A stretch of 64,000 nt of DNA from Macrostomum lignano (lineage: Eukaryota). This document shows positions 1 through 39,286 of this stretch, one piece after another. Where the stretch lies: positions 1,240,001 through 1,304,000 of the forward strand of contig NIVC01000010.1 in the NCBI GenBank assembly GCA_002269645.1, read 5' to 3'. The notes below the pieces were generated by a model. That model did no database searches. It had not been told where the DNA came from and was given only the letters and a program-made list of their open reading frames with translations. Position numbers and translations under genes: made by a program. The stretch's first letter is position 1, and each line of letters opens with the position of its first letter.

Positions 1-143
1 AACAGTCTAGCACTCTCTAATGGCAAATATTTAGGCCTCTAGTTATCTTTTGCCATAAAGAACGCCCATTACGAGCGTAAATAAGGATCTGTAGATAAAC
101 AAAGTTACATGAATTTCTAATCTACTAATGTTTTAGCCAAAAA

Positions 144-2183
144 ATGCACTCGACAAGACAACAAAGTTACTTCCCTCAAGCATCCGCCGGTGTGGCAAAG
201 AAGTTTCGAGCGGCCAACGGAACAGGCAGCTCTGTGGAAAATATTATGCATTTAATTTCCAGTCTCACACAACCTGCAAGCGGCTGCAACTTCTATGTAA
301 CTTTAGACGACAAAACACTTCAGCGGTTGAACTCAATGGTCGATGAGGTCACAAGCTGCACTCGAGACCGACTTCCGCTAGACAACATGGAACTAATTCA
401 GGAACACCAAAAAATGAGCTTCACAGGTGAAATGTTTCAAAAGTTGCTTCAACATGCAGCCACAGAAATTTCAAAGTTCCTGATGATGAATGTTAGACAG
501 AATACTCAGGCTTCAGAAATGAATTTACGGGCAGCGCAACAAGGAAATAAGGCTCAAACAGGTAAGAGCAAGGTGCTGCGGTACTACAACAACAGCACAC
601 CTGGTGGCAGAGCGTCATCCGTGCCGCAGACTCTGGACTTCCGCAATCAGCGATGGGACACGAGTGGAATGCCGGCCTCGATTCCACAACACCTGTGGGA
701 CATGAGACGAGAGGAGAACAGGTGGCAGTACTTCCACCTGCCAGATGCCAGCTTCACAGCGGCTCACCTGGTGTCAGTGACGGATCTGGCTGCTGACGGA
801 TTCTTCTACCTGCAGGAGTCGGACAGAGTAAAGTGTGCATTCTGCAAGGGTGTGCTCAAGGACTGGGAGGCGGGCGAGCAGGTCCGAGAGGCTCACAGAC
901 GCCACTTCTCCACCTGTCCGTTCGTGCTGTTCGTCGAGGTCGGCAACGTGCCTCGAGAACACAGAGAGCCGGAAGGAGACTCGAGGTCAGCAAAGCTGGT
1001 AGAGGCAGTGCAGTGCAGTGATCAGACTGCAGATGATGCAGCAGTGATGGTGAACGGAGACTGGAGAATGAAGCTGGTCGCTGAGCTACCACCGATGGAG
1101 TTCGCTGGACTGAACGAGTGGGCACTGGCGACACGCGAAACTCGTGGACCGAATGCACGACGCGTTGTGGACGACGAGCTGGTCGTAGTCGACATGATGA
1201 AGCGTCCTCAGCTTCCAGTGTCGAGCGAAGTAGCGAGATCTGCGTGCTCCGAGAGAGCTCTCACGAACCTGTCTGCTCTGCAGCACAGTGTCGAGAGTGA
1301 TCCATCGAGTGTGACTGCCAAACACACACAGTTCGAGACCTACCAAGCGAGGTCGCAGTCTCTGCACTCGGCTCTCGTTCAGCAGCCAGTGTACTTGCTT
1401 GCAAAGGCGGGCTTCTTCTACTCGGAAGCAGAGAGAGCGACCTGCTGCTTCAGCTGCGGACTTTGCATGAGCGAGTGGAGCTGCGACGATGATGTGTGGG
1501 TTGAGCACGCCAGGTGGTCACCTCGGTGTCCTCACGTGTTGTTGGAGCGAGGTAGCGACTTTGTACAGGCGGTGCATCGACTGTCGCCTCCCGTGCAGCA
1601 CCCGACTTGTGGCGCCTCAGCTCAGCGTCACACTGCATTGGTACAGACGGACTCAACTGCATCAGCTGGTGTTGCGACTGTCGACGGGTCCGCAGTCCAC
1701 AGCAGTCGCGCAGACGAGGCTCTCGCAGTCACTCCTGGAGTCGAGTTCAGAGTTGAGGCCAGAGACATCAAGGCGAGAGCCGACCTGCCCGTTGTGAGAC
1801 TGCTCACTCAACTCGGATTCTCCGCTCTGCAAGTGAGACTGTTCACAGAGCTGCATCTCAGACAGCGAGGCGATGACTTTGCCACATCGGAGCTGTTCCT
1901 CGACTTCATGCTCACCGAGAGCCGCCGCATGCGCAAGCAGTCGCAGGACCCGGAGGCGTTCTTCGAGAGCAGGATGTCTCAGATTCGAGAGTCTCTGAAC
2001 CAACAGCCGAGACCCCGAGACACAACCGACTGGAAGACGTGCAAGGTGTGCATGGACAAGGAGGTGAACATCATGCTGCTGGACTGTGGTCACGTGGCCT
2101 GCTGCTCAGTGTGCGCCAAGTCGCTGAAGACGTGCCCCATCTGCAGAGCCTTCATTCGGGGTGTACTTTTTCTGCGGGACTGA
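144..2183 (+). CDS. Inhibitor of apoptosis protein (IAP/BIRC family), BIR-BIR-UBA-RING, intronless
   Basis: 679-aa ORF. Two BIR motifs (GFFY..DRVKCAFC..L.DW....H..H...C; AGFFY....CCFSC....W.....W.EH..W.P.C), a UBA-like segment (LPVVRLLTQLGFS, cf. the MGF loop) and a C-terminal C3HC4 RING (CKVCMD...CGH..CC..CA..L..CPICR). Confidence 0.95.
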   Translation: MHSTRQQSYFPQASAGVAKKFRAANGTGSSVENIMHLISSLTQPASGCNFYVTLDDKTLQRLNSMVDEVTSCTRDRLPLDNMELIQEHQKMSFTGEMFQKLLQHAATEISKFLMMNVRQNTQASEMNLRAAQQGNKAQTGKSKVLRYYNNSTPGGRASSVPQTLDFRNQRWDTSGMPASIPQHLWDMRREENRWQYFHLPDASFTAAHLVSVTDLAADGFFYLQESDRVKCAFCKGVLKDWEAGEQVREAHRRHFSTCPFVLFVEVGNVPREHREPEGDSRSAKLVEAVQCSDQTADDAAVMVNGDWRMKLVAELPPMEFAGLNEWALATRETRGPNARRVVDDELVVVDMMKRPQLPVSSEVARSACSERALTNLSALQHSVESDPSSVTAKHTQFETYQARSQSLHSALVQQPVYLLAKAGFFYSEAERATCCFSCGLCMSEWSCDDDVWVEHARWSPRCPHVLLERGSDFVQAVHRLSPPVQHPTCGASAQRHTALVQTDSTASAGVATVDGSAVHSSRADEALAVTPGVEFRVEARDIKARADLPVVRLLTQLGFSALQVRLFTELHLRQRGDDFATSELFLDFMLTESRRMRKQSQDPEAFFESRMSQIRESLNQQPRPRDTTDWKTCKVCMDKEVNIMLLDCGHVACCSVCAKSLKTCPICRAFIRGVLFLRD

Positions 2184-2937: not shown

Positions 2938-3767
2938 TCAGCCTTGAAAACCGAAGAATCGCTTCGACTGAGGAGCACCGATGGGAATGTTGTACTCGAG
3001 GATGAGCACCTTCATCATGGCGTACATGCAGCGCCTGTTGCACCTCTCGCTGCTATCGTCGCAGTCGCATTCGCTGGGCAACTCGCCAGCCAGCATCCTG
3101 GTGCCCATCTTGGCGTTCTCCATGTTCTCCACGATCTTGTCGTAGCTCAGAGAGCCATCCGGCGGGCAGCGGACTCCGTTGACGATGCAGGGGCGCAGGA
3201 AGGCTTCAAGCTGGCCCTCGGTGAGCCGGTTGCGGCCGCCCGGCTGAGCAGACTGGGAAAGAGCGAGTTAAGATTGATTATGCACAGAATTATTAGCAAT
3301 TATGAGTATTGAGAGCGTTCATTTACATGTAAGAGTCACGTCTGTATTGGATGTGGACGGGCATCTGGACGGGAATCAGCACTGGATTCGGACAGATCTG
3401 CATTGGATTCGGACAGATCTGCACTGGATTCGGACAGATTTGCACTGGATTCGGACAGATCTGCACTGGATTCGGACAGATCTGCATTGGATTCGGACAG
3501 ATCTGCACTGGATTCGGACAGATCTGCACTGGATTCGGACAGATCTGCATTGGATTCGGACAGATCTGCATTGGATTCGGGCATATCTGCATTGGATTCG
3601 GACATTCTGGAAGATCTGCATTGGATTCGGACAGATCTGCACTGTATTCGGACAGATCTGCATTGGATTCGGACAGATCTGCACTGGATTCGGACATTCA
3701 CAATAAATAGAGGTCTTACCACAGTGGCCACGATGGCAAAAAAAGCAGCACAGACGATGAGCTTCAT
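2938..3767 (-). CDS. Two-exon 120-aa secreted Cys-rich protein / putative prohormone (exon 1 3767-3720, exon 2 3252-2938)
   Basis: Exon 1 MKLIVCAAFFAIVATV ends at a GTAAG donor (phase 0). The acceptor CTTTCCCAG at 3253 gives in-frame SAQPGGRNRLTEGQLEAFLRPCIVNGVRC...ECDCDDSSERCNRRC...QSKRFFGFQG*. Hydrophobic signal peptide; AATAAA about 85 nt downstream (2848-2853). Confidence 0.8.
3380..3697. repeat. 21-bp minisatellite (TGGATTCGGACAGATCTGCAY), about 15 copies, inside the intron of the secreted-protein gene
   Basis: Directly visible tandem unit; accounts for the repetitive WIRTDLH/QICPNP ORFs. Confidence 0.95.
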
Positions 3768-5310: not shown

Positions 5311-8023
5311 GAGAGTTCAGAAGCTACATGTAGTTTATTCAAAAATCTTTAGTCCATTCCTTTGTTGTTGGCTCTCCAACGCTTTCTATCGGGGGATGCT
5401 TGCTATCGAGTGATCGCTTGCTGTCGGGGTTGTTTACGATTGAGGGAAGGAAGCCTAGAGAGGCTTAGAATGTTTATGAGCGTAGTTTTATACGATGGTC
5501 AATAGCAAAAATACGAAAGCTACTTTAAATGGCAGATCTATTTAACTTGATCAAATGACACAGCTTTCTAATACTTTTGCTGGGTCTGCCAGCTAATTTT
5601 ACTTTCTGCAAAATGAATTAATGTCAACCGGACAAGAGGAAATGTGCATACGTTTTGGTTTCTACAACAGTATCTCAGCTTGATATGTATTTAGTTCACG
5701 AATCGATTCAGATATGTATTTAACCCCTTCCGTGACTGAGCAGAACCTGGATATTTAGGTCCACTATTAGAATTTCATCATGGCGTTGGTGTATGGAGGG
5801 CCCGTTGCACTGGAGACAGTGTAGGGACCTCTGCGATTTTAATTTTGTTCGTACGCTAACACCCACTGTTACAGGCTCTAATAAATAAGCAGCGTTTTCA
5901 CTAAGCGTATGTTACTCGTATAGCATCAACAACCGGAAATGAAAGTATTGGAGTTTGGAATTTTTATCATCTGTTTCCGGTTCAGTTTATATTGCTCCTA
6001 GTTAATTGCTGGATTGTTTGGAGCGATTATAAAGACTGAATGGTGACTGACACGTGATGCATCAGCTAATAGTTCGGCTATTAACAGTGGGAATACCAAG
6101 CCATTTTTCCGCCCGTAGAACTACCAAGAGGGGGGAATTCCCCCTGACAATTTTTTTGCTGCGCCGTATTGGAGCAACGCAGGGCACAGGAAATTCAAGA
6201 ACACGGGCTAACTTTTTGTTGAGTACCTTCTCAAATCAGAATCAAGTCGCGAGCCCTCCGGACCGTCGAGACATTCGACGATTCTGCCAGAAGGTTGGAT
6301 TTTTCCCAGTGCAGCCTTGCCAAGTCTCGAAATTTCATCAGCACGTCGATCACATTTGTCTGCATCAGCTCTGACTTCGTTGGTCACTGGATTTTACACA
6401 GGCGGAGCTTCTGGACCTTCAACAGGTGGCACCAGGTGACTATGGACACCCTAATGCGACTTTCTCTAGTTTCGCTGATCAAGCCTCGACAGTGGGCAAG
6501 CCTCAACTGCTGGACATCCTAGGCTAGTCTCTCAAGCATTCCGTTATCACCCGGACGCCGTCGGCACGTTCAACAGATTACACCAGGCGACTATGGACGC
6601 GCTGTTGCGAATTTCTGTGATTTCGCTGACCGGAACAGTTGCTCTGATCAGTTGCTCCTGTACAATGAGCTGGTTTTGTTTGAGGCTAGCTCTTAGACTT
6701 GATTTTGATCTTAATCTTAGTCTTAATCTAGTGGGTGTCATTTTGCTCTCCAGAGGGGGGGAATTGGTTAGTTTTAACTGTCCAAACTTCACACTGACAC
6801 TGAGGTAGAGCAAACTTCATCGCATCCACAGCAGTGACTTCATTACCTTTGATCTTTTCTGCAATCATTTTGCCTCTTTCGAACGGATTCTGGCCCATCT
6901 GCATAAAAAAGAAAAGTGCTGCGTAAGTGATGGAATGATTAAACCAGCAAACTTGTTTACCTCAAGGGCCAGGTAAAGAACTTTGCTAATGCTGCGGCCC
7001 GGATGGGAGAGGACAGAAGAGAGGAAAGGCGAGAGAGATAAGAGAAGAGAGGAATGAAGGGAGAGGAGAAGAGAAGATGAGAGAGGTGGACCTGGGCACC
7101 TGAGAGAGGTGGATGAGAGAGAGGAGAGAGGTAGTCGCCGTTTCTTACGACTCGATTAAAGAAACATCTAATTCTGCTTCAATAAGGATTCCCCATCATT
7201 TGCCCTGCTCTCAGTTGAGTCTGGAAACTGATAGCCGCCATGAAGCATGCAGAGCATGCAATCAGACAGGTAAAGAGAATGCAGTGAGACAAAAGGAAGC
7301 ATCAGACACATTCGTCCCAAATCCCGGTATCTGAAACCGGTAAAACGGATATTTCAGGAAAAGCAATACCGTCCTCAAGCATTGTGGATTCAAATCTGAA
7401 TGCACTGAGGAATTATTCAAGGTGTTAAAAATGAGAATTTCTTTGCTGCACCAAAAGAGGTCCCAAGCATCACCGCAGAGCGGCGGCCTGGCTTTCTCCA
7501 TAGGTCGTCAAGGCCCTACAGCTCCTATTATATTTCTAGTCTTCCAACTTGTCTTCATGGCTTTCCATCAACGACTTCAATAATCCTAATTAGTGTTAAT
7601 TTCGTTTCCCTCTTTGGCAACAACAGCCATTACGCCTCCTCCTTGCACTTTGATACTATGGCATCATTGACTATGGTGTCATCGAAGCTTCAGCCGTGGC
7701 ATGCGCGACATGTCCGTCCGATAAAGAACTTCTGATTTATTTTCGTCATACATCCGAGTGATGCACTGGTCTCACTCCGTCCGGCCAAGCGATAAAGTTG
7801 ATGAAAAATAGTTTGAGCAGGTTTTGCTCGTTTCCGCATTTTGAGCAGGTTTTGCTGTCCGAGGCATTCTCCGTCAGGATACGATTCAAGAAGTGTTGCT
7901 CGCCAGTAACACTCACCAGTTACCACTTATAGTGCGTCCAAATGGCCGAATGTCCTTAGCCGCAGCTCCCTCATGCTGAACAAATTTCGATATCTGTTCA
8001 AAGTTCCTGGCGAGGCTGACGAT

Positions 8024-19125: not shown

Positions 19126-22100
19126 CTTGAACCGAACCGAATACGAAAACTCAATTGTAATTCCAATCTAGTCATTTGACTTTTGATTGGCTGCAAAGTT
19201 TATCGTCAATTACATGCAAATACAATAGGGTTTATTCTAGAACTACATGTAATGATTAAATGAACATCCAAAGGCAAACTTCGAAAGATTTTAGTTTAAT
19301 AGAGTAGCTTTCTTGTTGGTACAAATATAAACTCATTAAACACAGTAAAATCATTGCATGTCACTTATAATTCAACCAATATTCACTGAATTAATCTGAA
19401 TTAAACAACTAATTATTAGCTAAGCATGTATTTTGATTGCATGAAATTGCTGCTACCGCAGGTACCGCACGACATTCGATATCAGCTTCGAGCCGACACT
19501 TTGAGATCGCGCTGGTCTGGCTTTAAGTATGCAACCAGCTTTCAGGTGTTTCTGGTGGACGAAACCAACAATATTCTGGCAAAAAGTCCGTCACTCCCGC
19601 CTGAACAAGTTCGCTATCAGTTTTTTGGTCTTGATTTGGAAGTATTTAAGGTGCGTTTTAACGTTGAAATTTCTTTGTACCTAATATTGAATTAAATGCT
19701 ATTTGTTTGCTTAAACCACAGACGTATTTCACCAAAGTGTCTGCCACGAACGCGCTGGGAACGGTGTCAGCCACGTCCAGTGGCGTCACAGTGGAATCGC
19801 GCAGAGCAAAGCTTGGCTTGCACCCGCTGAATGTGCTGCCACCAGTGGCCGACGAAACGCGTCGCTATATGGTTGAAATGGATTTCCAGAGTTCACTGTC
19901 AACAATCAGAGTGCAATGGACCAGGCCTAGACCGCCGCTCGATGTGATATTTCACACCGCTTACTGGTCGCTTGAAAGGAAGCGGACACATGGTTTGTAA
20001 ATTGATTTGTGTTTTGGGAGGGACAAGGCCTGACGCTGGCCCACATGCGACTGTCTGTATGAGCGTACAAGTTCCTTGGTTCCATTCCATGAGTAGACCC
20101 TATCTAGGGGATCCGTCGTGCGATTCATGCTCATGAAAAAAATTCCAAAGGCACATAATGTGCACAATACCTAACGGCGTGAGTCAGGGCTTTGACTCAT
20201 GGATTAGTGTAATTGGCACAGCTATTTGCCTTCTTGCGGCCTTCAGGTTGACCGTTGCTTTGATTTGCGCCAGTGCCCAAAATCCTCTTGCGACAAAAAA
20301 TTTCAGACTGGCAAACAGTTGAAGACTTCAGACGAGTGGCTTACAACAATGATACAGTGGTACTCACCAACTTGCACTTAAAGGATGGATCCATGTACAG
20401 ATCACTGCTAAAGCTATGTAGCGAGAGGGTGTGCTCGGAAGCGGAGGCAACTCCTGAACTCATGGTACTGCACACACCTCCTAGCCCTAGCGACTGGTCT
20501 GTAAATCTTGAAGCTGATAATAAAACTGTGAGGACTTTCTTCAAGTGTTTCGTACTTGTATTTCTGAATTTCGGATTTCCATTGCAATTATATAATCGCT
20601 AAATTACCAATTTACCTTGATAATGCGCTGCAGATTAACCTTAATATGAAGGAATTCAACCAGTTTCCGTCATCAGAGAAGAATGCTATTAGCCACTATC
20701 AGTGGTCGCTGCAGCATGACGGCGCAAATATACTAAACTGGACTGATATTGACTTGCCTTCTAGTGATAGTGCATCCAAGGTAATATGTTATTTACGTTA
20801 AGGGCGTTAGAGTGAATATTTATGATAGTGCGATTACTTTGATTTTTCAGTCTATAATCATTGAGCTGCCCTGGCCAGTGCGCTCGACAAAGTGCCTGCA
20901 ACTGGCAGTCAGGTGTTTCAACAGGGCCGGCTTGTCAACAATTGACAGACGTCAGCTGAGAGACTGCAGCGCTTACGATCCGAAATTAATCATTGATCCA
21001 ACTGTAATTGATGCAATTGGACCAGTGAATCTGGGCAAGCACAAGCTGTGGACTCTCCCAGACGCTGATTATGCAAGTTCCAAAGCGCAGCTTGCGGCTG
21101 TGTGGCCTAAGCTGCGATACCCGGTGAGAATCTCTGTTGTATAGATTGTATAGATGTTTCGCGTAAGACAAACTGATTTTTTAAATCTTCTTTTAGTTGT
21201 ACGAATGGGCTCTGCTGGCGAGCAGCGGAGGCACTGGAGGCTCTGGATATTACGACAAAGTGCTGCTCAATCCTCCAAGAAGCCCCATCAACCATCCTGA
21301 CGCCATCGCAGGCGGATTCACTGATGCTGAGTTTGTGAATGTGCCGCCGGAACTGTCAATGCAGCCAGGTAGGCGCTATCACCTGTGTATTCATGCCAAC
21401 GAGACGCTGTTGCAGTTTGAAAAGTTCACTCAGCTGCTGCCAGAGCTGGTTGAGTGCAGCGATGGCATCACTGCTCTGGGCGAGACTTCTGGGCGAGAGG
21501 GTCGAGTTGCTCTAAACGGTCGATTTGAGGATCAGATGGTGGTAAGTAGGCCATGATTCCCTTACTCATTTTACGCAAAAAGAATCAAGTACTTGGTCCA
21601 AACTCTGCAGACGTCGCTCTCAGACTTGCTAATCGAATGGACCGGTTTCGAGGCGCATGAGCAGCCGCAGGCTGATCTGCCTCACGTAACTGACATTCAA
21701 GAATACGCGTACTGCCTTGGCTCCTTCGAATCGGGTTGCGATGTACTTGACTGGATCAGCGTTGGTGTAGCTAAAAGTGCATCTCTGACTGGACTCAGCT
21801 CTGAGCTGCAGGAAGGCCACCGGTACTTTGTTTCTGTCAAAGGTATTATGATTATTTTGATTCGTATTGAGGACTATTGACATTACTAGAGATCATTCAT
21901 GAAGAAATATAATGTTTACAAAATAAATTTACTCTTTAATTACTTTCCGAAGGACTCGACTTCATTGGCCGGATAGTGCGGTCTCAGCCGCGCTCATTTC
22001 GCGTCGTCATCCATCCGCCGCGAATCAATCCGGGCGCACTGATCGCTTTCGGAGGACGTCACCGCTCGATTTCGGTCCTGGGCGTTGGCGAAACAGTGTG

Positions 22101-29364: not shown

Positions 29365-30654
29365 ATGACTAAGCTCCACGCTGCCAAAGGAGCGACATTC
29401 TGTCTGCAAATAAATTTACAGCATTGCGTATCTGCGTCAGTAAATCTGATGAAGATTGCTGAGCTGTACAGGCCAGGCCTCATCCTGATCCAGGAACCCT
29501 GGATGCGCAACGGTAAGTTGCCCAACATTCCCTCTGGCTACTCTGATTTTTATGTGTGTGGCCCGGGGAACAGCCGCCCTAGAGCGGCTATCCTCGCTGC
29601 TAGCCATCTCCAGGCTTGGCTGAGGACTGATCTCTCTGATGGAGACCTTTGCGTCATCCAATCTAATCATTTCTCTCCGCGTACGTGTCTTGTTGCCTCG
29701 GTTTATATCCCAGGCGACAGAGACCCTGCTCCCGAGAGTTTACTGCGCCTTGCGCAGTACTGCGAGTCCCAGAACGCTGAGCTGTGCTTAGGGGGCGACC
29801 TCAACGCGCACCACAAGCACTGGGGCAGCAAAGATACCAACACTAGAGGAGAGGAGCTTCTGGCCCTCATCTCTAACACAAACCTCATGCTCTGCAACCG
29901 CGGCAGCACTCCTACCTTTAATAATGGCAGATGGACCGAGGTCCTCGACGCCACACTCGTTACCCCAAGACTCTTTGACAGAGTCAAGGAGTGGAGAGTC
30001 TGGTCTGAGGAGCCCTCCCTGTCTGACCACTGCTTTATCGCCTTTAATATCGCGGACACTAAAACCCAGTCTCCGATCACTTGGAGACGCAATATCCGCA
30101 ACACTGATTGGGCGGCCTACAAGGCTGCCCTTGATCTGCACCTGCAGGAACTCACGGACTTACGTCCGATTGAGACCTGCGAGGATGTGGATCATATGGC
30201 TGAGACGCTGACAGGTTGCATTATTGCAGCCTACGAAGCGGCTTGTCCTGCTCGCGCCTACAGAGGCAAGACCTCGGCGCCGTGGTGGAACCCGGAGCTG
30301 GGGAAACTCAGGCGGAAGGCCAAAAGCCTTCATCGCCGTGCCATGAAGACCGGAAACCCGGAGGACATGGAGCTTTTCCGGCAAGCCTCCCGCAATTTCA
30401 AATCTGAAGTGCGCAAGGCCAAGGAATGTAAGTGGCGCCAATTCTGCAATGAATTGGATCAAGACAGACCTACTTCTAGGCTTGTCAAGGCCCTTACAAT
30501 GGACAAAATGTCCAAATTAGCCATGATAAAAAAGATGATGGCTCTCTTACTAAAGACCCTGAAGAAGTGCTTCAGCATATGCTTAGCACATTCTTCCCGA
30601 GGGTACCTACTGCTAGACCGGAGCCCAACCATTCGATGGATGGAGCCACCCTAG
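29365..30654 (+). CDS. LINE ORF2, N-terminal part: apurinic-like endonuclease
   Basis: QINLQHC, LIQEPW, LGGDLNAHH..WG, PTF, VLDATL and SDH are APE motifs; the frame shifts -1 near 30528-30534. Confidence 0.92.
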   Translation: MTKLHAAKGATFCLQINLQHCVSASVNLMKIAELYRPGLILIQEPWMRNGKLPNIPSGYSDFYVCGPGNSRPRAAILAASHLQAWLRTDLSDGDLCVIQSNHFSPRTCLVASVYIPGDRDPAPESLLRLAQYCESQNAELCLGGDLNAHHKHWGSKDTNTRGEELLALISNTNLMLCNRGSTPTFNNGRWTEVLDATLVTPRLFDRVKEWRVWSEEPSLSDHCFIAFNIADTKTQSPITWRRNIRNTDWAAYKAALDLHLQELTDLRPIETCEDVDHMAETLTGCIIAAYEAACPARAYRGKTSAPWWNPELGKLRRKAKSLHRRAMKTGNPEDMELFRQASRNFKSEVRKAKECKWRQFCNELDQDRPTSRLVKALTMDKMSKLAMIKKMMALLLKTLKKCFSICLAHSSRGYLLLDRSPTIRWMEPP

Positions 30655-33104
30655 CGGCGGGCATTGTCACTGAAGACCTAATCGCTCGTGCGGTCAGAAC
30701 CTTCAAACCCTTCAAATCTCCTGGACCTGATGGTATCTACCCTGTTCTCCTTCGTGAAGCAGCCAAGATACCCTCGTTCCTGAGACTCACCCGCAATCTT
30801 ATGCGGGCCTCTATCCAGCTGGGATACGTTCCCAAAAGCTGGACTGAAGCTCGAGTAGTCTTTATTCCCAAACCTGGGAAGGGTGACTACCAAAGCGTCA
30901 AGGCCTTCCGGCCAATTAGCTTAACGTCAGCAATGCTTAAGCTCACTGAGAGGCTTATTCTCTGGCGGCTGCTCTCCTGCGAGCTGACAGCGATGCCCCT
31001 CAGCAATAATCAGCACGCCTTCCGTACCGGGAGGTCGACTGACAGCGCCCTGCATGCGATTGTCGAAAAGATTGAACGGGCGGTACTGGGTGACGGTTAC
31101 GCCCTGGCTCTCTTTCTTGACATTGTTGGCGCCTTCGACAACGTTATCTTTGAAGCGTTTCAGAGGGCCCTTCAAAATCGCAAAGCTCATGCTACCCTCA
31201 TACGGTGGATCATGTACATGATCTCCAACCGTACGGTCACTGCCCAACTTCTTGGGCAAACTGCCTCCACCAGAGTCTGTAAGGGTGGACCCCAAGGCGG
31301 AGTCCTCACCCCGACGCTCTGGAACCTGGTCATGGACGCTCTTCTGAGTGACTCCCGACCTGACCCCGTCTTCAAAGTCGGGTATGCTGATGACGTCACG
31401 GCCATTGTGGCAGGACCGTCTCCCAGCACGCTCAGGGATCTGATGCAGAGCTTTATCCGCAAAGCAGAATCCTGGGCCAATGACAATGGTTTGGAACTCT
31501 CTGAGCCCAAAACCGTTGCCATTATGTTTACCAGCAGACTACGCTGGAACATACGTCCTCTGCAGCTCTACGGCAGAGATATTGCCTTCGCGCACCAGAC
31601 CAGATGTCTCGGGGTCACACTTGACCACCGGCTCAACTGGTCCTTCCACGTGAAAGCAAAAGCTAAGCGTGCCTCAGCCATCCTGGCCCAGCTCCGACGA
31701 GCACTTGGCACTTCTTGGGGTCTATCCCCAAAGCGGCTTTGGTGGATCTATACTTCCGTAGTTAGACCTGCCATTACGTACGCCTCTGTTGTCTGGGTTA
31801 GCGCTACCCAGGTCAAAAGCCATGCAGACCTGCTCAACACGATCCAAGGCAGAGCGTGTAGGCTCATCTGCAACGCCACCAGGTCCACGCCCTTTGCTGG
31901 CATGGGGGCCTTTCTTAATCTTCCGCCTCTTGACCTCTTCATCAGGGGTGAGGCGGCTAGAACGACGCGGCGTCTAATTGATGCCGGCGTCAAATTCATT
32001 TACATGAGAGCACCTGCTAAGCGGAACCTTGTCCCGCATAGCGATCTGTGCCTCAACTTTCTCAACGAGTGTCAGGCCAATCGCGTCTTCACCGATGGCA
32101 TTGCCTCAACGCTCAACCTGAGACAGCGCTACTCCGTAGCTATCGACTCGCGCGATAACATCAATGACCATTGGAACCCTGGTGAGCTTCATTGCTACAC
32201 CGACGGTTCTAAGCAGTCAGCCAACACCGGCTTTGGTGTTGGAATCTTTCTGAACGGGAGGGTCATCGCTACCCACGCTCAATACACTGGGGTCAACTCC
32301 AGTGTTTTCCAAAATGAAGTTCTGGCCATCAGCTCCTGCACTGCAGAGCTTCTCGCCACTGGCGTTACTGGTAAGAACATCATTTTCCATTCGGACAGCC
32401 AAGCTGCCTTGCACGCCATCAGTGGCTGCAGCACCAACTCTGCTACAGTCCTTGACTGTATCAAACTCCTCAATGTGTTGGGTTCCGCCAACAAAATTAC
32501 CCTTAAGTGGGTTCCGGGGCATGTGGGGATCCGAGGAAATGAGTTGGCTGACACCCTTGCAAAAGTTGGTGCCTCCGGCTCCTCTCTCGGCCCCGAACCT
32601 CTTGTCCCGATTCCTGGCTGTGTCATCGACTCGCGCATCAAAGCGTGGATCAGGACTCAGCACCGCTCGACTTGGGCGAACCGCACGAACTGCAGGCAAT
32701 CCAGAGGCGCTGTCCCTCAGCCCTCTCACCAGCTCCGGAAGCTCCTCTTGCGCCTCTCGCGCAGAGACATCCGGGCTGCCACCATGACCCTCTCTGGTCA
32801 CGGCTGCTTCTCCAGGCACCAGTACCTGCAGGGCAACGCCACCAACGCCACCTGTAGTTTCTGCAACTCAGGTGACGAAACCGCTGAGCATTTCGTCAGC
32901 ATCTGTCCCGCCTTCACGCGGGCCAGACTCACTTACCTCGGGCCACACACATCTATTACTGAAGCGTGCAAACCCGAAAACTTTAATCAGCTCATGCGCT
33001 ACCTTCGGGCCACCCGCAGGGCTGAACTCTCCTTTCCAGAGAGCACCATAGCTGCTGGCGACACTGGGGGACCTCCCTGGGCGGCGCCAACCCTCCGTCC
33101 ATAG
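30567..33104 (+). CDS. LINE ORF2, C-terminal part: reverse transcriptase, RNase H, CCHC finger
   Basis: KSPGPDGI, RPISL, QHAFR.GRST, LDIVGAFD, PQGGVLTPTLW, YADD, LGVTLD; RNase H YTDGS...E..AI...DSQAAL...WVPGH.GI.GNELAD; CSFC...ETAEHF...C. Confidence 0.95.
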   Translation: MLQHMLSTFFPRVPTARPEPNHSMDGATLAAGIVTEDLIARAVRTFKPFKSPGPDGIYPVLLREAAKIPSFLRLTRNLMRASIQLGYVPKSWTEARVVFIPKPGKGDYQSVKAFRPISLTSAMLKLTERLILWRLLSCELTAMPLSNNQHAFRTGRSTDSALHAIVEKIERAVLGDGYALALFLDIVGAFDNVIFEAFQRALQNRKAHATLIRWIMYMISNRTVTAQLLGQTASTRVCKGGPQGGVLTPTLWNLVMDALLSDSRPDPVFKVGYADDVTAIVAGPSPSTLRDLMQSFIRKAESWANDNGLELSEPKTVAIMFTSRLRWNIRPLQLYGRDIAFAHQTRCLGVTLDHRLNWSFHVKAKAKRASAILAQLRRALGTSWGLSPKRLWWIYTSVVRPAITYASVVWVSATQVKSHADLLNTIQGRACRLICNATRSTPFAGMGAFLNLPPLDLFIRGEAARTTRRLIDAGVKFIYMRAPAKRNLVPHSDLCLNFLNECQANRVFTDGIASTLNLRQRYSVAIDSRDNINDHWNPGELHCYTDGSKQSANTGFGVGIFLNGRVIATHAQYTGVNSSVFQNEVLAISSCTAELLATGVTGKNIIFHSDSQAALHAISGCSTNSATVLDCIKLLNVLGSANKITLKWVPGHVGIRGNELADTLAKVGASGSSLGPEPLVPIPGCVIDSRIKAWIRTQHRSTWANRTNCRQSRGAVPQPSHQLRKLLLRLSRRDIRAATMTLSGHGCFSRHQYLQGNATNATCSFCNSGDETAEHFVSICPAFTRARLTYLGPHTSITEACKPENFNQLMRYLRATRRAELSFPESTIAAGDTGGPPWAAPTLRP

Positions 33105-34516: not shown

Positions 34517-35202
34517 TTATAGTAAATATTCGAGTACGAGAGGTATGAGGTAGCTATTGAACTTCGGAGATGACCATGGTTCTGATTACTTTCTACCTCT
34601 TTTACTTACTTAGTAATTCACAACTATTAAACACTTTTCCAGAGTTTCCGCTGGAATCCTAATTTACAACGGCACACCTGACGCCTCCGCTGTTAAACCC
34701 CAAAAAACTAACGCAGAGTAAAAGCAAGTGGCACAAAAGACCGGCAGACGCGGCCCAGAAAGGGAAAACGAACCCCTTAAGCGACGAAATATATTGATTT
34801 TGTAATTTAAAAGAGAAAAAAATATTTTGCCAAAATTACGCCGACTCAGCGGCCGCGACGCGTGACTAAATAGCACAGAGCGGGGGGGAGGCTGCCCTAA
34901 GCCCTGCACGCACGCAGAGCACCAGCACCCCACCAACCCACCAAAGCGAGGCCGGACCGGTGCGGGGGGGTTTAAAACCAGTTAGAGTCAGATACCTGCC
35001 TCAAACTGACGTATTAAACCCCAAAAAACTAACGCAGAGTAAAAGCAAGTGGCACAAAAGACCGGCAGACGCGGCCCAGAAAGGGAAAACGAACCCCAAC
35101 ACCAACAGAAAGAGGGAGGAAGGAGACAAGCGTGTAAAATCAAATCAACGAGCCGCAGAAAAAATTAAACCAAGCCAAAAAAGCCAGGTCCAAGCAATAG
35201 CT

Positions 35203-37650
35203 CTAAGACTCGTACCTGAGCTCGGGATCTGCTTCAGCCGTCGCAACTCGCTCCGCTCGAGAACTGCGCCAGAGACCGGGGCTCAGCGCGAGCGACGCCT
35301 GCTCAAGCAACCGGGCCGCCGTTGACTCATTGAGGCAGGCCCTGCGCAGATCTTCCGGCTGCGCCTTGGCCCGGCCGAAGTAGCGCAGCAGAAACAGCAG
35401 CATGTGGCGGGGATGCGTCAGGCAGCGCGACAGCGGGTCGCTCAGCAGCTGCCAGGACCCCGGCATATGGTGAGCTCGAAACTGAAAGTCGTGCCTCAGC
35501 GCTGCCAGAGTGGCCGTTTTGAGCAGGGTCATGACGATCGGGTTGCTGGAGGCACCGCGGTTGATGGTGCCGACCGCCGCGCTGCTGTCGACGTAGCAGG
35601 CCACCTTGCCGCCGGCCAGCTGCTCCTGGAACAGAATGATGGCGAGCAGCGGCAGTACCGTCTCCTTGGCGTTGATGTGCTCGCTCAGGAAGATGCCACC
35701 GGCGTCACTGCAGAAGTCGACGAGGCGGAACTCGCGCTGGCCATCAGAGGTGCTCAGGATCATGCCACCGGCACTGACGCAGGCGTCCGTCTCGACCGCT
35801 GCCAGCACTCGTGCACGCCGCCACAGCTTGTCGGTCGGGAACACTGGGATTGCATGCTGCCAGAACTGCAACTGGGCCAGTAGCTCGCCGCGCACCGGTA
35901 CTCGATGATGCTGCTCAGGAATAGCGATGGTTATCTCCAGGAGCGCGCGAAGCAGGGCCTTTGCAGGTTTGGCCACTTTGCAGAACCAGTTCAGTTTGCC
36001 GACTAGGTGCTGAAGGCGACGTTTTTGCAGGCTCTTCGAGTTGGCGCAGTCCTGGAGAAGTTCTCGAAGGCCGTCCATCTTCTCGGCGGGCAGTGACAGC
36101 AGGCCAGTCAATGTGTCGATCTGCACACCCAGGAAAGTGACCGAAGTGGCTGGGCTCTGCGTCTTGGCCCAGTTGATCTCAAAGCCGAGGCGCTGCAGGG
36201 TGACCAGCAGAAAATTGTGCAGCTGCAGGCAGACCTCGTAGTCCCGGGCAGCTATGCAGAAATCGTCGAGGTATGCGATGACGACGAATTTGGACAGATG
36301 CGAGAATTGCCTGTACATAAAGCGCTTGACAGCTTGCGTTAGGCGGTGGAAAATGTTGACTGATGCCGCCGCACCGAATGGGAGTCGCGTGTCAACCAGA
36401 TAAGTGGGCTGACCGTCCAGCTCGAACGTCCACCGGAGCCCCGTCGCCTGATAGCAGTCTGGGTGCACCTGAACACTTCGGTAGGCGTGGCGTAGGTCGA
36501 CCTTGCTGATGAACCAGCCTGGTGCCAGCTGCCTGGTGAGATCCTCGACATTGGCAAACTTCATCTTCTGGCGGGGCTTGTACAGATCGTTGAGGCTGTT
36601 GCCCTGTGGCGCGGACGCGTCGTGAATCAGGCGGATGGCGCCGTCTGCCTTCGGGACGGCGCCCAGTGGGCTGATGATGGTCGGCCTGGCGATGCCCAAG
36701 TCAGTTGCGCTGATGTACCGGCCAGCCACGACCTCCTCTCTGATCCGCAGCTCAACGGCATTCCGATTTGCCTCGCAGCAGGCGGATGCATGATTTTCGA
36801 GCTGGGATTCGCTGGTCGGAGCCGCGTCGGTGATGCGAAAGCCATCGCGAATTCCCGCGATCAGAAACTCCGCGTCCGAGTCTCCGAGCAGGACTGGTGT
36901 CCAAGCAGCAGTTAACAGCGGCCAACGTTTTCGGAGTGCAGCCACCGGGCCGGCAACAGGGCCGGCAGCAGCGCCGGCAGCGGGGCCGGCGGCAGGGCCG
37001 GCGGCAGGGCCGGCGGCAGGGCCGGCGGCAGGGCCGGCGGCAGGGCCGGCGGCTGGGCCGGCGGCAGGGCCGGCAGCAGGGCCGGCAGCAGGACCGGCAG
37101 CAGGGCCGGCAGCAGGACCGGCAGCAGGGCCGGCAGCAGGACCGGCAGCAGGGCCGGCAGCAGGGCCGGCAGCAGGACCGGCAGCAGGGCCGGCAGCAGG
37201 ACCGGCAGCAGGGCCGGCAGCAGGACCGGCGGCAGGGCCGGCAGCAGGAACGGCAGCAGGACCGGCGGCAGGAACGGCAGCAGGACCGGCGGCAGGGCCG
37301 GCAGCAGGACCGGCAGCAGGGCCGGCAGCAGGACCGGCGGCAGGGCCGGCAGCAGGGCCGGCAGCAGGGCCGGCAGCAGGGCCGGCGGCAGGGCCGGCGG
37401 CAGGGCGAGTGGCAGGGCGAGTGGCATGGCGAGCGGCAGTGCGAGCGGCAGGGCGAGCGGCAGGGCGAGCGGCAGGGCGAGTGGCACGTCGAGCGGCAGG
37501 GCGAGCGGCAAGGCGAGTGGCAGGGCGAGCGGCAGGGCCAGTGGCAGTGCGAGCAGCTGTCTCGCATGGAATTAAAATTTTGGACTGTCTATCAGACGCC
37601 GTCCGCTTAGGGCTAAAACTGGTGCCGCCGCGACCCGCCTCTTTGCTCAG
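35203..37650 (-). CDS. DIRS-type RT + RNase H, with an upstream repeat-encoded (PAAG)n linker; no ATG start of its own
   Basis: [39 protein letters not shown]; RNase H ETDA, HINAKE, VDS. The frame is open from about 37650 to 35203; the track start at 36945 is a GTG. Confidence 0.85.
36948..37555. repeat. 12-bp GC-rich minisatellite (~50 units: GGCCGGCAGCAG type, then GGCGAGYGGCAG type) inside the Ngaro-like element
   Basis: Directly visible; gives long repetitive ORFs on both strands. Confidence 0.95.
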
Positions 37651-38692
37651 TTTTTTGATTCGGCAGCCACCGAGCTGTGTTGCAGCTTTGAGTGGCTCCC
37701 TTCGCAGATGCGGCAGATGTGGGCGAAATTGCAGGTGTGTCTGTGACAGCCTTTGTTGCTATTGAACAAGCCGCAGATGACCTGTCCAGCGGATGACAGC
37801 TGGCCCCTGCTACGGTGACCCTGGACTCCTTGACCGACCGCGACTGGGCCAGCAGCTCGCAGGTTTTTGGGCGCCGTCATATGCTTGATGATGAGGTTCA
37901 GATCGGGGCTGTCCCAGTCGCGCTGTCGCGAGTGCTGCTGCAGCCTCATGTCCTGGTCGTACTGGAGCACCACCTTCCAGTCGTAGCCAGCGTCGATCAG
38001 CTCGCCGATGTGGATGTTAAAGTTGAGGTAGGCGTTCAGACTCTTGCAGTCGGGCTGTCCATCCGTACCGGGCGCCACCAGCTGGCCGGTCTCCAGCAGT
38101 CGCTGCATGATCCGCGCGTTGGCAGCCACCCACTGGCCGAAGTTGACTCCGGACAGGCTCGGCGTTGCGCCTTTCAGAGTCAGGCGACCACGTTCCTGTG
38201 TCAGCCATCCTCCGACTGCTGCCTCTCGTCCAGAAATTCCGGGATGAGCAGCGCTGATGGTGGCCGCTGGGCTCCGGCCGAATCAAACCTCGGTTGTCGG
38301 CTCTGGTCCCCGAACAGGCTGGCGTAGATGTCCGGCCCTCCTCTGGCCAGCGGGGGCGATGCGGCGCCACTGCGGATCGACTGCACTTCATCCCGCAACT
38401 GGGCCTCAGCCTTCTGCAATTTAAGCAGCTCGATCCTCTTCTGAGTCTGCCGAATCTGCGCTTCTGTGGCCTCCTCCGCTGGCGCAGCCCGGCGCACGTC
38501 ATCCTCGTCCTGGTCGTCGTCACCGTCGTCATCGCTGGGAGCTCGTTCGGCCTGGCTTGCAGCGAGCAGGCGGCCTATCAGCTCTTCTTTATTGCCACTT
38601 GTAGGTAAGGCCTTCTCGCGTAAGGCATCTTTGAGGGCCTGCACGGTCATGCTGCCCAACGTAGAGTCCATTGTGAGTGCAGTGCTTGGCAA
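37647..38692 (-). CDS. Gag-like ORF of the Ngaro-like element: N-terminal SAP motif, C-terminal C3H/CCHC-like zinc finger, one frameshift near 38205
   Basis: MTVQALKDALREKALPTSGNKEELIGRLL (SAP); LLIPEF; after a -1 shift LTLKG..LSGVNFGQWVAANARI; CGLFNSNKGCHRHTCNFAHICRICEGSH. Confidence 0.8.
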
Positions 38693-39286
38693 ATCAGGCA
38701 GGCTAAAAATATTTTGCCAAAATTACGCCGACTCAGCGGCCGCGACGCGTGACTAAATAGCACAGAGCGGGGGGGAGGCTGCCCTAAGCCCTGCACGCAC
38801 GCAGAGCACCAGCACCCCACCAACCCACCAAAGCGAGGCCGGACCGGTGCGGGGGGGTTTAAAACCAGTTAGAGTCAGATACCTGCCTCAAACTGACGTA
38901 CAAAATTAAGCGTCTACAGTCCAATCGTTTCCCCATTTCTTGCTAAGGACGCTTTCGTTGGCAACGCATCGGCGCTTATGCTTAGCTGGTGGGGATTTTT
39001 AGACCAAGTGGAGCTGGCAGATTATCAGATCCGACTGATAGACGTTGGGCAGAGTTTTGTAGCACGCGACTGGCTCAGTGTTGGCGGCTCCAATGTGCAG
39101 TCGTTGCGCTTCGGTGACTTGTCGCTGGGCACCGGCAGAATCTACCGAGTCGAGGTGCGGGCAGTGAACGTCCTTGGTAAAATGAGCGAAACTGTAGCTC
39201 ACGAGTTCCGAGTTGACGGCAAGCCTCCTAAACTGACAGGTTGGTTGCTTCATTGAGTTTTCGAATTGATATCATACTTGCATAAA

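Follow-up and report, generated by a model that had tools for sequence, protein, structure and literature searches.

Gag-pol frameshifting is textbook knowledge for retroviruses and many LTR elements, where A_AAA_AAC serves as a −1 signal, for example at the gag-pro sites of betaretroviruses and deltaretroviruses. At the −1 sites of plant luteoviruses and dianthoviruses, the 0-frame stop codon directly follows the slippery heptamer. Few heptamers are as prone to shifting on eukaryotic ribosomes as A_AAA_AAC (PMC5009743). For retrotransposons of the DIRS order, the expression of pol has been left open, the ORFs being described as separate or overlapping (PMC3266345, PMC6681497, PMC9210276), and elements with a tyrosine recombinase (YR) are stated to encode no protease (PMC3783388). 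Our literature search returned no report of a slippery site in DIRS-order elements. Here we describe such a site at the end of gag in an element of Macrostomum lignano. The site is common to a clade of Ngaro-like elements within this order and probably directs programmed −1 ribosomal frameshifting in the manner of retroviral gag-pol signals.

The element lies on the minus strand of the window, by which we mean the whole 64-kb stretch of DNA analysed, and its features are collected in the table below. Its gag product carries a SAP domain at the N-terminus and a CCCH-like zinc-finger region at the C-terminus. The pol frame is open from 37758 to a stop codon at 35205–35203, soon after the RNase H region (about 35425–35802), and contains an RVT_1 domain at 36118–36552 (Pfam, E 9e-17) with the YLDD motif at 36273; its product is 99% identical to a UniRef protein of M. 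lignano. Apart from RVT_1 and RNase H-type domains, Pfam searches of pol from the window copy and from two relatives (L009 and L010) revealed no methyltransferase, protease or DDE integrase. A tyrosine recombinase was found neither in the window copy (Pfam) nor anywhere in the 64 kb (tblastn). Among the relatives, Phage_integrase matches below the Pfam cut-off were obtained for L001 (E 1e-4) and L010 (3e-5), L009 has a recombinase-like ORF, and these three display the gene order gag - RT/RH - YR. The sequence-only reading had assigned the element to the DIRS order, which is right and can be made more exact: with its split direct repeats, its recombinase-bearing relatives and no methyltransferase, it is best classified as Ngaro-like.

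Features of the Ngaro-like element and of its gag/pol junction in the window
Feature	Position	Strand	Evidence or remarks
Whole element, A1 - gag - pol (RT/RH) - B1 - A2 - B2	34693..38905	-	repeat families D2/D3, self-blastn, ORFs
Split direct repeat A1 (5' end)	38705..38905	-	196–201 nt, 99–100% identical to A2
gag, one frameshift in window copy	37647..38671	-	Pfam SAP E 1e-9; ATG at 38671 confirmed
Gag/pol overlap, 37 codons; pol in −1 frame relative to gag	37647..37758	-	ORF frames
Slippery heptamer A_AAA_AAC, proposed tandem −1 slippage site	37650..37656	-	in phase with gag; same in 7/7 relatives
gag stop codon TGA, directly 3' of heptamer	37647..37649	-	TGA in 8/8 elements
Unique spacer 3' of shift site, G-rich tract at its 5' end	37555..37646	-	frame reading, folding, Rfam
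Tandem array, 12-nt unit, about 50 copies	36947..37554	-	TRF and translation
pol open frame: linker, RT, RNase H	35203..37758	-	851 codons, no internal stop; Pfam
Split direct repeat B1	35014..35097	-	84 nt, 100% identical to B2
Split direct repeat A2, directly after B1	34818..35018	-	repeat families, self-blastn
Split direct repeat B2 (3' end), 41 nt past A2	34693..34776	-	repeat families, self-blastn

The window copy is a defective, non-autonomous derivative, with a frameshift in gag and its recombinase missing, and therefore yields no full Gag-Pol; it is also young, because its terminal repeats are 100% identical. The frame change inside gag, which has a counterpart in one relative (L003), was considered as a second programmed shift and rejected: gag is a single ORF of 313–372 aa in five relatives (P0081, P0084, P0085, P0095 and P0233), no in-phase heptamer lies at the break, and the breaks in the window copy and L003 are not homologous in position. 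A shift site at the pol/recombinase junction was likewise rejected; in L009 and L010 the recombinase lies in the −1 frame relative to pol with an overlap of 280–300 nt, and no conserved heptamer is present.

At the gag/pol junction, the signal is intact although the copy itself is defective. The 3' end of gag reads ...GCC GAA TCA AAA AAC TGA GCA AAG AGG CGG GTC GCG GCG GC..., which bears out the sequence-only reading, in which gag was said to end GAA TCA AAA AAC TGA with the heptamer directly before the stop. A_AAA_AAC stands in the X_XXY_YYZ phase relative to the gag frame and is the sole in-phase heptamer in the C-terminal gag frame. A second match to CAAAAAACTGA in the window, at 19617–19627, was examined as a possible second element and rejected as a chance match devoid of ORF context. 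In the 92-nt spacer, the 0 and +1 frames are closed after the heptamer and the −1 frame alone is open. The same reading had described the −1 frame as uninterrupted through the repeat and on into RT/RNase H, which is true of all 851 codons, RVT_1 included; the open frame across the repeat itself carries little weight, however, because no stop codon interrupts the 12-nt array in any of the three frames. The array keeps frame and, read in the pol frame, encodes a low-complexity linker of Pro-Ala-Ala-Gly/Arg. A near-identical M. lignano protein from another copy (P0001) likewise starts within the 12-nt array, and in two relatives (L002 and L001) the corresponding place is occupied by 21-nt arrays. 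The first pol-frame ATG, which the earlier reading had put at about 36565, well inside RT, is found at 36564, some 100 codons past the conserved N-terminus of pol, which begins near 36873. The window copy has no usable pol start codon of its own.

For comparison, we assembled seven relatives with DNA by protein searches and contig look-ups with exact proteins, from five sources: JGI metagenome 3300040801, two Logan runs, a second M. lignano family (NIVC01002140.1) and the family of the window copy. With the window copy, eight elements were compared. Gag identity among these relatives is 26–56%, and RT identity 38–42%. Conservation of heptamer, stop and frame offset had been put forward as a check on the proposed shift, and it holds throughout: gag ends NCA AAA AAC TGA, in the same phase, in all seven relatives, and the heptamer, the adjoining TGA and the −1 offset are invariant in all eight lineages, those from short-read metagenomes included. 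In every relative with sufficient sequence past the site, the −1 frame alone stays open and encodes RT; in these five relatives (L007 to L011) it is homologous to the window pol (38–42% identity, E 1e-26 to 1e-131) and, in L009, L010 and L011, contains RVT_1. In L007 and L008 it opens only 15 and 24 nt, respectively, before the end of the stop codon, with the heptamer still inside; because the overlap is so short, the shift is pinned to the heptamer. The anatomy and phase of the site, the lack of a usable pol start in the window copy and nucleotide-level conservation in eight lineages are thus established.

No relative in the clade of the window element was found to have gag and pol in one frame, an arrangement that the sequence-only reading had named as evidence against its proposal. 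The shift site is absent from three distant RT relatives (L004, L005 and L006); as judged from the sequences compared, it is a feature of the clade and not of the whole superfamily. Metagenome contigs scanned with one query at a time, the window Gag or the window RT, gave pattern matches and no confirmed relative. Among the 12 best-scoring Gag homologues whose sequence was read, 10 have a Lys-Asn C-terminus. The record of one Gag homologue, MEE4248673.1, assigns it to a bacterial MAG.

Codon shuffling of one sequence gave a probability of about 0.06 for an in-phase XXXYYYZ (Y = A/T) somewhere in the 38-codon overlap, and of about 0.004 for one within the last three codons. When the synonymous codon usage of each gene is taken into account, an invariant site in all eight lineages has a joint probability of about 1e-11, a figure that assumes independence and is therefore a lower bound on p.

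Throughout the eight lineages, the run of A is exactly six, never longer, and always followed by C (C-AAAAAA-C). For cellular polymerases to slip efficiently, a run of six A is short, and six A followed by C makes up the optimal eukaryotic ribosomal heptamer. Both points speak against transcriptional slippage, in which RNA polymerase would miscount the six-A run so that some transcripts join gag and pol in one frame and are then read normally by the ribosome. Downstream RNA structure bears on the same question. Stable hairpins starting 5–7 nt past the heptamer, a spacing typical of stimulators of ribosomal frameshifting, are predicted in four relatives: L011 (z −4.8 to −6), L010 (z −3.1), L003 (z −2.5) and L002 (z −2.3). 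A hairpin at this canonical spacing is thus present in about half of the relatives. No significant structure was detected in the window copy, L008 or L009 (z −0.4 to +1.6), by a folding procedure that is blind to pseudoknots. In the window copy, folding of 45–200 nt downstream was never better than shuffled controls (MFE z +0.3 to +1.6), pairing of the G-rich tract with the C-rich tandem array is possible but no stronger than expected by chance, and Rfam gave no match around the site. Of the stem-loop or pseudoknot that the sequence-only reading had suggested looking for, a stem-loop is predicted in the four relatives and none is detectable in the window copy. These three elements out of eight that lack detectable structure are compatible with polymerase slippage, as is the homopolymeric nature of the conserved core, and slippage of polymerases on A runs is established in some viruses and bacterial insertion sequences (PMC5009743). 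Weighing the length of the run and the placement of the hairpins, we consider a transcriptional origin of the shift unlikely.

The conservation extends to nucleotides on which the protein sequence places no demand. The codon preceding the heptamer encodes Ser, Ala, Thr or Pro, and its third position is always A. In the rest of these gag genes Lys is encoded mostly by AAG, with AAA in the minority, and in the internal conserved KHMTAPKN block of gag the Lys-Asn codons do vary. These observations tell against separate translation of pol, whether through initiation at an internal or non-AUG site, through ribosomes that re-initiate past the gag stop or on a spliced or subgenomic RNA, with Lys-Asn-stop being kept for some other reason: a constraint on Lys-Asn as protein cannot account for invariant synonymous positions, nor for a third-position A that persists while the amino acid changes. 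Separate translation would agree with the published description of DIRS-order ORFs as separate or overlapping, with no recoding signal (PMC3266345, PMC6681497, PMC9210276), and five relatives (L001, L007, L008, L009 and L010) do have a pol-frame ATG between the gag stop and RT. The position of this ATG is not conserved across all relatives, however, and the window copy has none ahead of the conserved pol residues; furthermore, the array periods of 12, 21 and 21 nt all keep frame, which fits translation through the arrays. Independent expression of pol therefore seems improbable to us. That the offset arose by accident, through mutation or an assembly error in the homopolymer length of a decaying copy with the heptamer as a chance match, is very improbable, for although the window copy is damaged elsewhere, homopolymers are error-prone in long-read assemblies and an in-phase heptamer in the overlap of one sequence has a chance of 6–12%, the identical 11 nt and offset recur in eight independent assemblies and lineages too divergent in Gag to be near-identical copies, the terminal repeats mark the copy as young and the pol frame runs over its full length with no stop.

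Programmed −1 ribosomal frameshifting would proceed as follows. When a ribosome translating gag arrives at A_AAA_AAC, its P site would contain Lys-tRNA paired with AAA and its A site Asn-tRNA paired with AAC. Most ribosomes would stop at the adjoining UGA and release Gag, whereas a minority would slip back by one base, re-pair on AAA_AAA, bypass the stop and go on in the −1 frame. These shifted ribosomes would cross the variable low-complexity linker, which in the window family is the frame-preserving tandem array, into RT/RNase H, and the outcome would be a Gag-Pol fusion made at a fixed ratio to Gag. We infer from the comparison that the slippage is ribosomal; its efficiency, and what stimulates it in the window copy, are likewise matters of inference. 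The earlier proposal that RT is made as a Gag-Pol fusion gains support from the invariance of the site and from the RT encoded in the −1 frame. Because the elements encode no protease, the fusion presumably stays uncleaved.

The mechanism is canonical; the class of element that hosts it is new. For the Ngaro-like clade, the conserved signature of 11–12 nt provides a concrete and testable mechanism of expression, and it can serve as an annotation marker, given that gene callers at present split or mis-start pol. It would also present a case of Gag-Pol fusion in elements that have no protease, and homologous elements appear to have switched between frameshifting and readthrough in the course of evolution. 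As a tentative extension, the Gag-RT fusion might be permanently uncleaved, with the fast-evolving, frame-preserving, Ala-rich arrays of 12- or 21-nt units providing, instead of release by proteolysis, a flexible tether that can expand, and lineages of this single superfamily might have switched between A_AAA_AAC-UGA frameshifting and UGA readthrough while keeping the same ratio.

Among known systems, the stop codon abutting the heptamer recalls the luteovirus and dianthovirus sites, which differ in belonging to RNA viruses, in using another heptamer and in depending on a long-range RNA stimulator; there is no evolutionary relation. Nearer at hand is a sister lineage represented by L004 and L005 (Oculina patagonica), whose Gag is homologous at 30% identity and whose Pol is 36–38% identical. 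There, gag and pol share a reading frame interrupted by a single TGA; CTA or CTC follows it, neither heptamer nor offset is present, and the residues directly after the stop are conserved between the two. This arrangement resembles readthrough of the gammaretrovirus type, and, as in the present clade, Pol would be needed as an extension of Gag; in contrast to it, the window pol sits in the −1 frame.

With the Ngaro superfamily as described (PMC3266345, PMC3783388, PMC9210276), the element shares the A1...B1-A2-B2 split direct repeats, the order gag - RT/RH - YR in its relatives and the lack of a methyltransferase, which separates Ngaro from DIRS1-like and PAT-like elements, as well as of a protease and a DDE integrase. 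It stands apart from described Ngaro elements in the short gag/pol overlap with a conserved slippery site, which defines the present clade, and, in the window copy, in the missing recombinase and the 41 nt that separate A2 from B2.

Compared with the A_AAA_AAC signals of retroviruses and LTR elements, four differences emerge. The element has no protease by Pfam, so that the fusion would go unprocessed; the stop abuts the heptamer in every member of the clade; the members do not share a downstream structure, and the window copy has no detectable one; and, in the window family, a long tandem-repeat linker lies between the site and RT. The likeness is nevertheless extensive: the same heptamer stands in the same phase at the end of gag, pol follows in the −1 frame with no start of its own, a hairpin begins 5–7 nt downstream in about half of the relatives, and a fixed ratio of Gag to Gag-Pol would be expected in both.

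On the minus strand, the end of gag in the Ngaro-like element reads GAA TCA AAA AAC TGA GCA AAG AGG CGG GTC, with an A_AAA_AAC heptamer directly in front of the gag stop; the sequence-only reading was correct on its position, its phase and the adjacent stop. It had also claimed an open -1 frame into RT/RNase H, and this frame indeed extends over 851 codons, including RVT_1 (Pfam, E 9e-17), a YLDD box and a region resembling RNase H. By three-frame translation, the 92 nt of unique spacer 3' of the heptamer are open in the -1 frame alone. That it stays open through the repeat is true but carries little weight: all three frames are open across the 12-nt tandem array, so that an open pol frame there is uninformative by itself. 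The first pol-frame ATG, predicted near 36565, lies at 36564, inside conserved pol; the conserved pol N-terminus begins at 36873, some 100 codons upstream of this ATG, and conserved RT residues also precede it. When codons were shuffled, a heptamer in phase (Y = A/T) turned up in the 38-codon overlap in 6% of cases, and within the last three codons in 0.4%. From this single sequence the site exceeds chance only modestly, and the decisive evidence is the comparison with relatives. A second exact CAAAAAACTGA at 19617-19627 (minus strand; 0.07 expected per window) was rejected as a second site and is considered a chance match, as it has AT-rich surroundings without ORF or Gag similarity.

The window Gag, used as query in a word-indexed search, yielded two relatives, P0080 and P0081 (54-56% identity), and an exhaustive phmmer search with P0081 yielded 613 Gag homologues; 10 of the 12 best-scoring homologues read end in Lys-Asn. 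One Gag homologue with this ending, P0230 (MEE4248673.1), is annotated as a hypothetical protein in a MAG named 'Kangiellaceae bacterium' and probably derives from a mis-binned 1.3-kb contig of the eukaryotic retrotransposon clade. We compared the DNA of seven relatives: L002, L003, L009 and L011 from JGI metagenome 3300040801, L007 and L010 from two Logan runs, and L008, a second M. lignano family (NIVC01002140.1). In each of the eight elements, whose Gag proteins are 26-56% identical in pairwise comparison, gag ends in NCA AAA AAC TGA, with the heptamer in phase and 0 nt from the TGA stop. The codon before Lys-Asn specifies Ser, Ala, Thr or Pro, and its third letter, which is the first letter of the heptamer, is invariably A. 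Elsewhere in these gag genes AAG is preferred for Lys (2 AAA versus 13 AAG in L007), and in the internal KHMTAPKN block, though conserved, the Lys-Asn codons vary among the window copy, L002 and L003. If the amino acids are fixed and synonymous codons are drawn at the frequencies of each gene, eight identical sites would arise together with a probability of about 1e-11, under an assumption of independence that is reasonable, given the divergence, but not exact. A (TGAG)n microsatellite of 18 copies lies upstream of gag in L002 (5-76), and the translated 5' end of L003 likewise appears repetitive.

Conservation of the frame offset, which the sequence-only reading had proposed as a check together with that of heptamer and stop, was likewise observed. 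In L007 to L011 only the -1 frame stays open after the site, and its ORF is a homologue of the window pol (38-42% identity, E 1e-26 to 1e-131; RVT_1 in L009, L010 and L011). Stops end the 0 and +1 frames after 4-45 codons; the one exception, a 144-codon 0-frame run in the GC-rich L011, was read as chance. The -1 frame opens only 15 nt (L007) or 24 nt (L008) before the end of the stop, which confines the shift zone almost exactly to the heptamer. In L002 and L003 it is open to the end of the contigs, which stop short of RT. Between site and RT, the window's family, and only this family, carries tandem arrays with periods that are multiples of three, the other families having short non-repetitive linkers of roughly 30-60 codons. 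A CTGCYGCT core is common to the otherwise different array units, in which the pol frame encodes an Ala-Ala-rich low-complexity peptide. In L001, the closest RT relative (54% identity), the RT frame is open throughout the array and one other frame has a stop in every unit. The frame-preserving periods and the open pol frame fit translation through the linker.

Tandem -1 slippage of ribosomes on A_AAA_AAC, with those that do not shift terminating at the adjacent UGA, would explain these observations best, and we consider it likely. This heptamer is among the most shift-prone on eukaryotic ribosomes according to a 2016 review (PMC5009743). The claim that RT is made as a Gag-Pol fusion thereby gains strong comparative support and extends from one copy to the clade. 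Folding of the sequence 3' of the site, also proposed as a check, gave a mixed result: L011, L002, L010 and L003 have hairpins or stems and L007 a weak structure, but no pseudoknot-free fold beat shuffled sequence in L008, L009 or the window copy (for the latter z +0.4 to +1.6, with 200 nt folded as well). In most members a G-rich tract follows the site at 6-14 nt, and no Rfam match was found around it. A downstream stimulator is thus plausible for the clade, and not demonstrated for the window copy. Slippage during transcription of the A6 run would yield a nearly identical product; this is improbable, since exactly six A plus C are conserved and the hairpins sit at ribosomal spacing. Translation of pol independently of gag, for which pol-frame ATGs upstream of RT in several relatives would speak, is slightly less probable still, as it leaves the nucleotide-level invariance of the site unexplained and the window copy has no pol start. 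An accidental indel or assembly error is scarcely credible, being excluded by eight independent sequences.

Features of the window element and its relatives (window positions for the window copy, locus positions for L handles)
Feature	Position or extent	Strand	Remarks
Whole Ngaro-like element	~38905 to 34693	-	repeats and ORFs
Repeat A1	196-201 nt	-	precedes gag and pol
Repeat B1	84 nt	-	after pol; A2 directly 3'
Repeat B2	41 nt beyond A2	-	repeat partner of B1
gag	37647-38671	-	split into two frames
Heptamer A_AAA_AAC	37656-37650	-	X_XXY_YYZ phase versus gag frame
gag stop TGA	37649-37647	-	directly 3' of heptamer
pol open frame	37758 to stop 35205-35203	-	three-frame translation; one base back from gag
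Tandem array	36947-37554	-	TRF; 12 nt x about 50
L001 array	1-107		21 nt, just before RT
L002 array	1253-1323		21 nt, just after site
L003 gag	251-1284		split into two frames, -1 offset as in window
L009 pol/tyrosine-recombinase overlap	3455-3734		recombinase in -1 frame versus pol; 280-300 nt
L010 pol/tyrosine-recombinase overlap	2951-3251		as L009
L004 stop between gag and pol	1915-1917		first dozen or so residues past stop conserved with L005
L005 stop between gag and pol	6408-6410		as L004
L011 structure	5 nt past heptamer (start)		12-14-bp perfect hairpin; z -4.8 to -6
L010 structure	from 7 nt		two-tier stem; z -3.1
L003 structure	from 6 nt		long-range GGGGGCUG/CAGCCCCC stem; z -2.5
L002 structure	at 7 nt		8-bp G/C hairpin; z -2.3
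L007 structure			weak; z about -1 to -1.7

The split direct repeats of the window element (each pair 100% identical over the blastn matches) are arranged as in published Ngaro and PAT-type elements, which belong to the order DIRS (PMC3266345, PMC9210276). Pfam detected no methyltransferase, protease or integrase in the element, and a tyrosine recombinase is absent from this copy and from the entire 64-kb window. Its gag is broken by one frameshift and its pol frame has no stop, and five relatives have a single continuous gag (313-372 aa) that shares its SAP domain and zinc-finger region with the window copy. The gag splits in the window copy and L003 were rejected as a second programmed shift, as they lack a slippery site and lie at non-homologous positions; they were read as independent damage. 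With its recombinase missing, its gag frameshifted and its pol frame uninterrupted, the window copy is a young and damaged derivative of a Ngaro-like element. The best protein match to its pol, the M. lignano UniRef entry P0001 (99% identity), shares the short pol tail, so the recombinase-less form is present in more than one copy or allele. A tyrosine-recombinase ORF follows RNase H in L001 (Phage_integrase E 1e-4) and is likewise present in L010, and L009 has a recombinase-like ORF. Within the pol/recombinase overlap, L009 has three slippery heptamers in phase and L010 has none; no such heptamer is conserved there. Upstream of gag on the same L009 contig, a recombinase C-terminal fragment (40-378; weak Phage_integrase) suggests that copies of the element lie head to tail or that its assembly is circularly permuted. 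An 845-aa ORF adjoining the window element (30567-33104, plus strand; RVT_1 E 5e-28, RNase_H E 7e-11) belongs to another retroelement, encoded on the opposite strand.

The one-frame arrangement of gag and pol, named beforehand as evidence against a frameshift, was not found in the fetched members of the site-bearing clade with RT, but it does occur in two more distant relatives, L004 and the coral (Oculina patagonica) locus L005 (Gag 30%, Pol 36-38% identical to the window copy); L006 is degraded. In L004 and L005, one TGA stands between gag and pol, with CTA or CTC directly after it, a layout of the stop-codon-readthrough type in a sister lineage. The frameshift site is thus the mark of one clade in a larger Gag/RT family with at least two recoding layouts. 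A full-text search found no literature pairing 'slippery' with Ngaro, DIRS1, PAT-like or YR retrotransposons; the original Ngaro descriptions in subscription journals lay outside its scope, and a prior mention is possible. The portion of the 2016 frameshifting review available to us does not mention DIRS or tyrosine-recombinase elements (PMC5009743), and Ngaro and VIPER elements are usually without ORF overlaps (PMC3266345). The mechanism itself is canonical, and functionally the solution is the same as in retroviral gag-pol. In contrast to the retroviral systems, however, no nucleotide separates heptamer and stop in any member of the clade, the stimulator is not conserved, and the elements lack a protease, as described for YR elements (PMC3783388), so that the Gag-Pol fusion would presumably stay intact and uncleaved.
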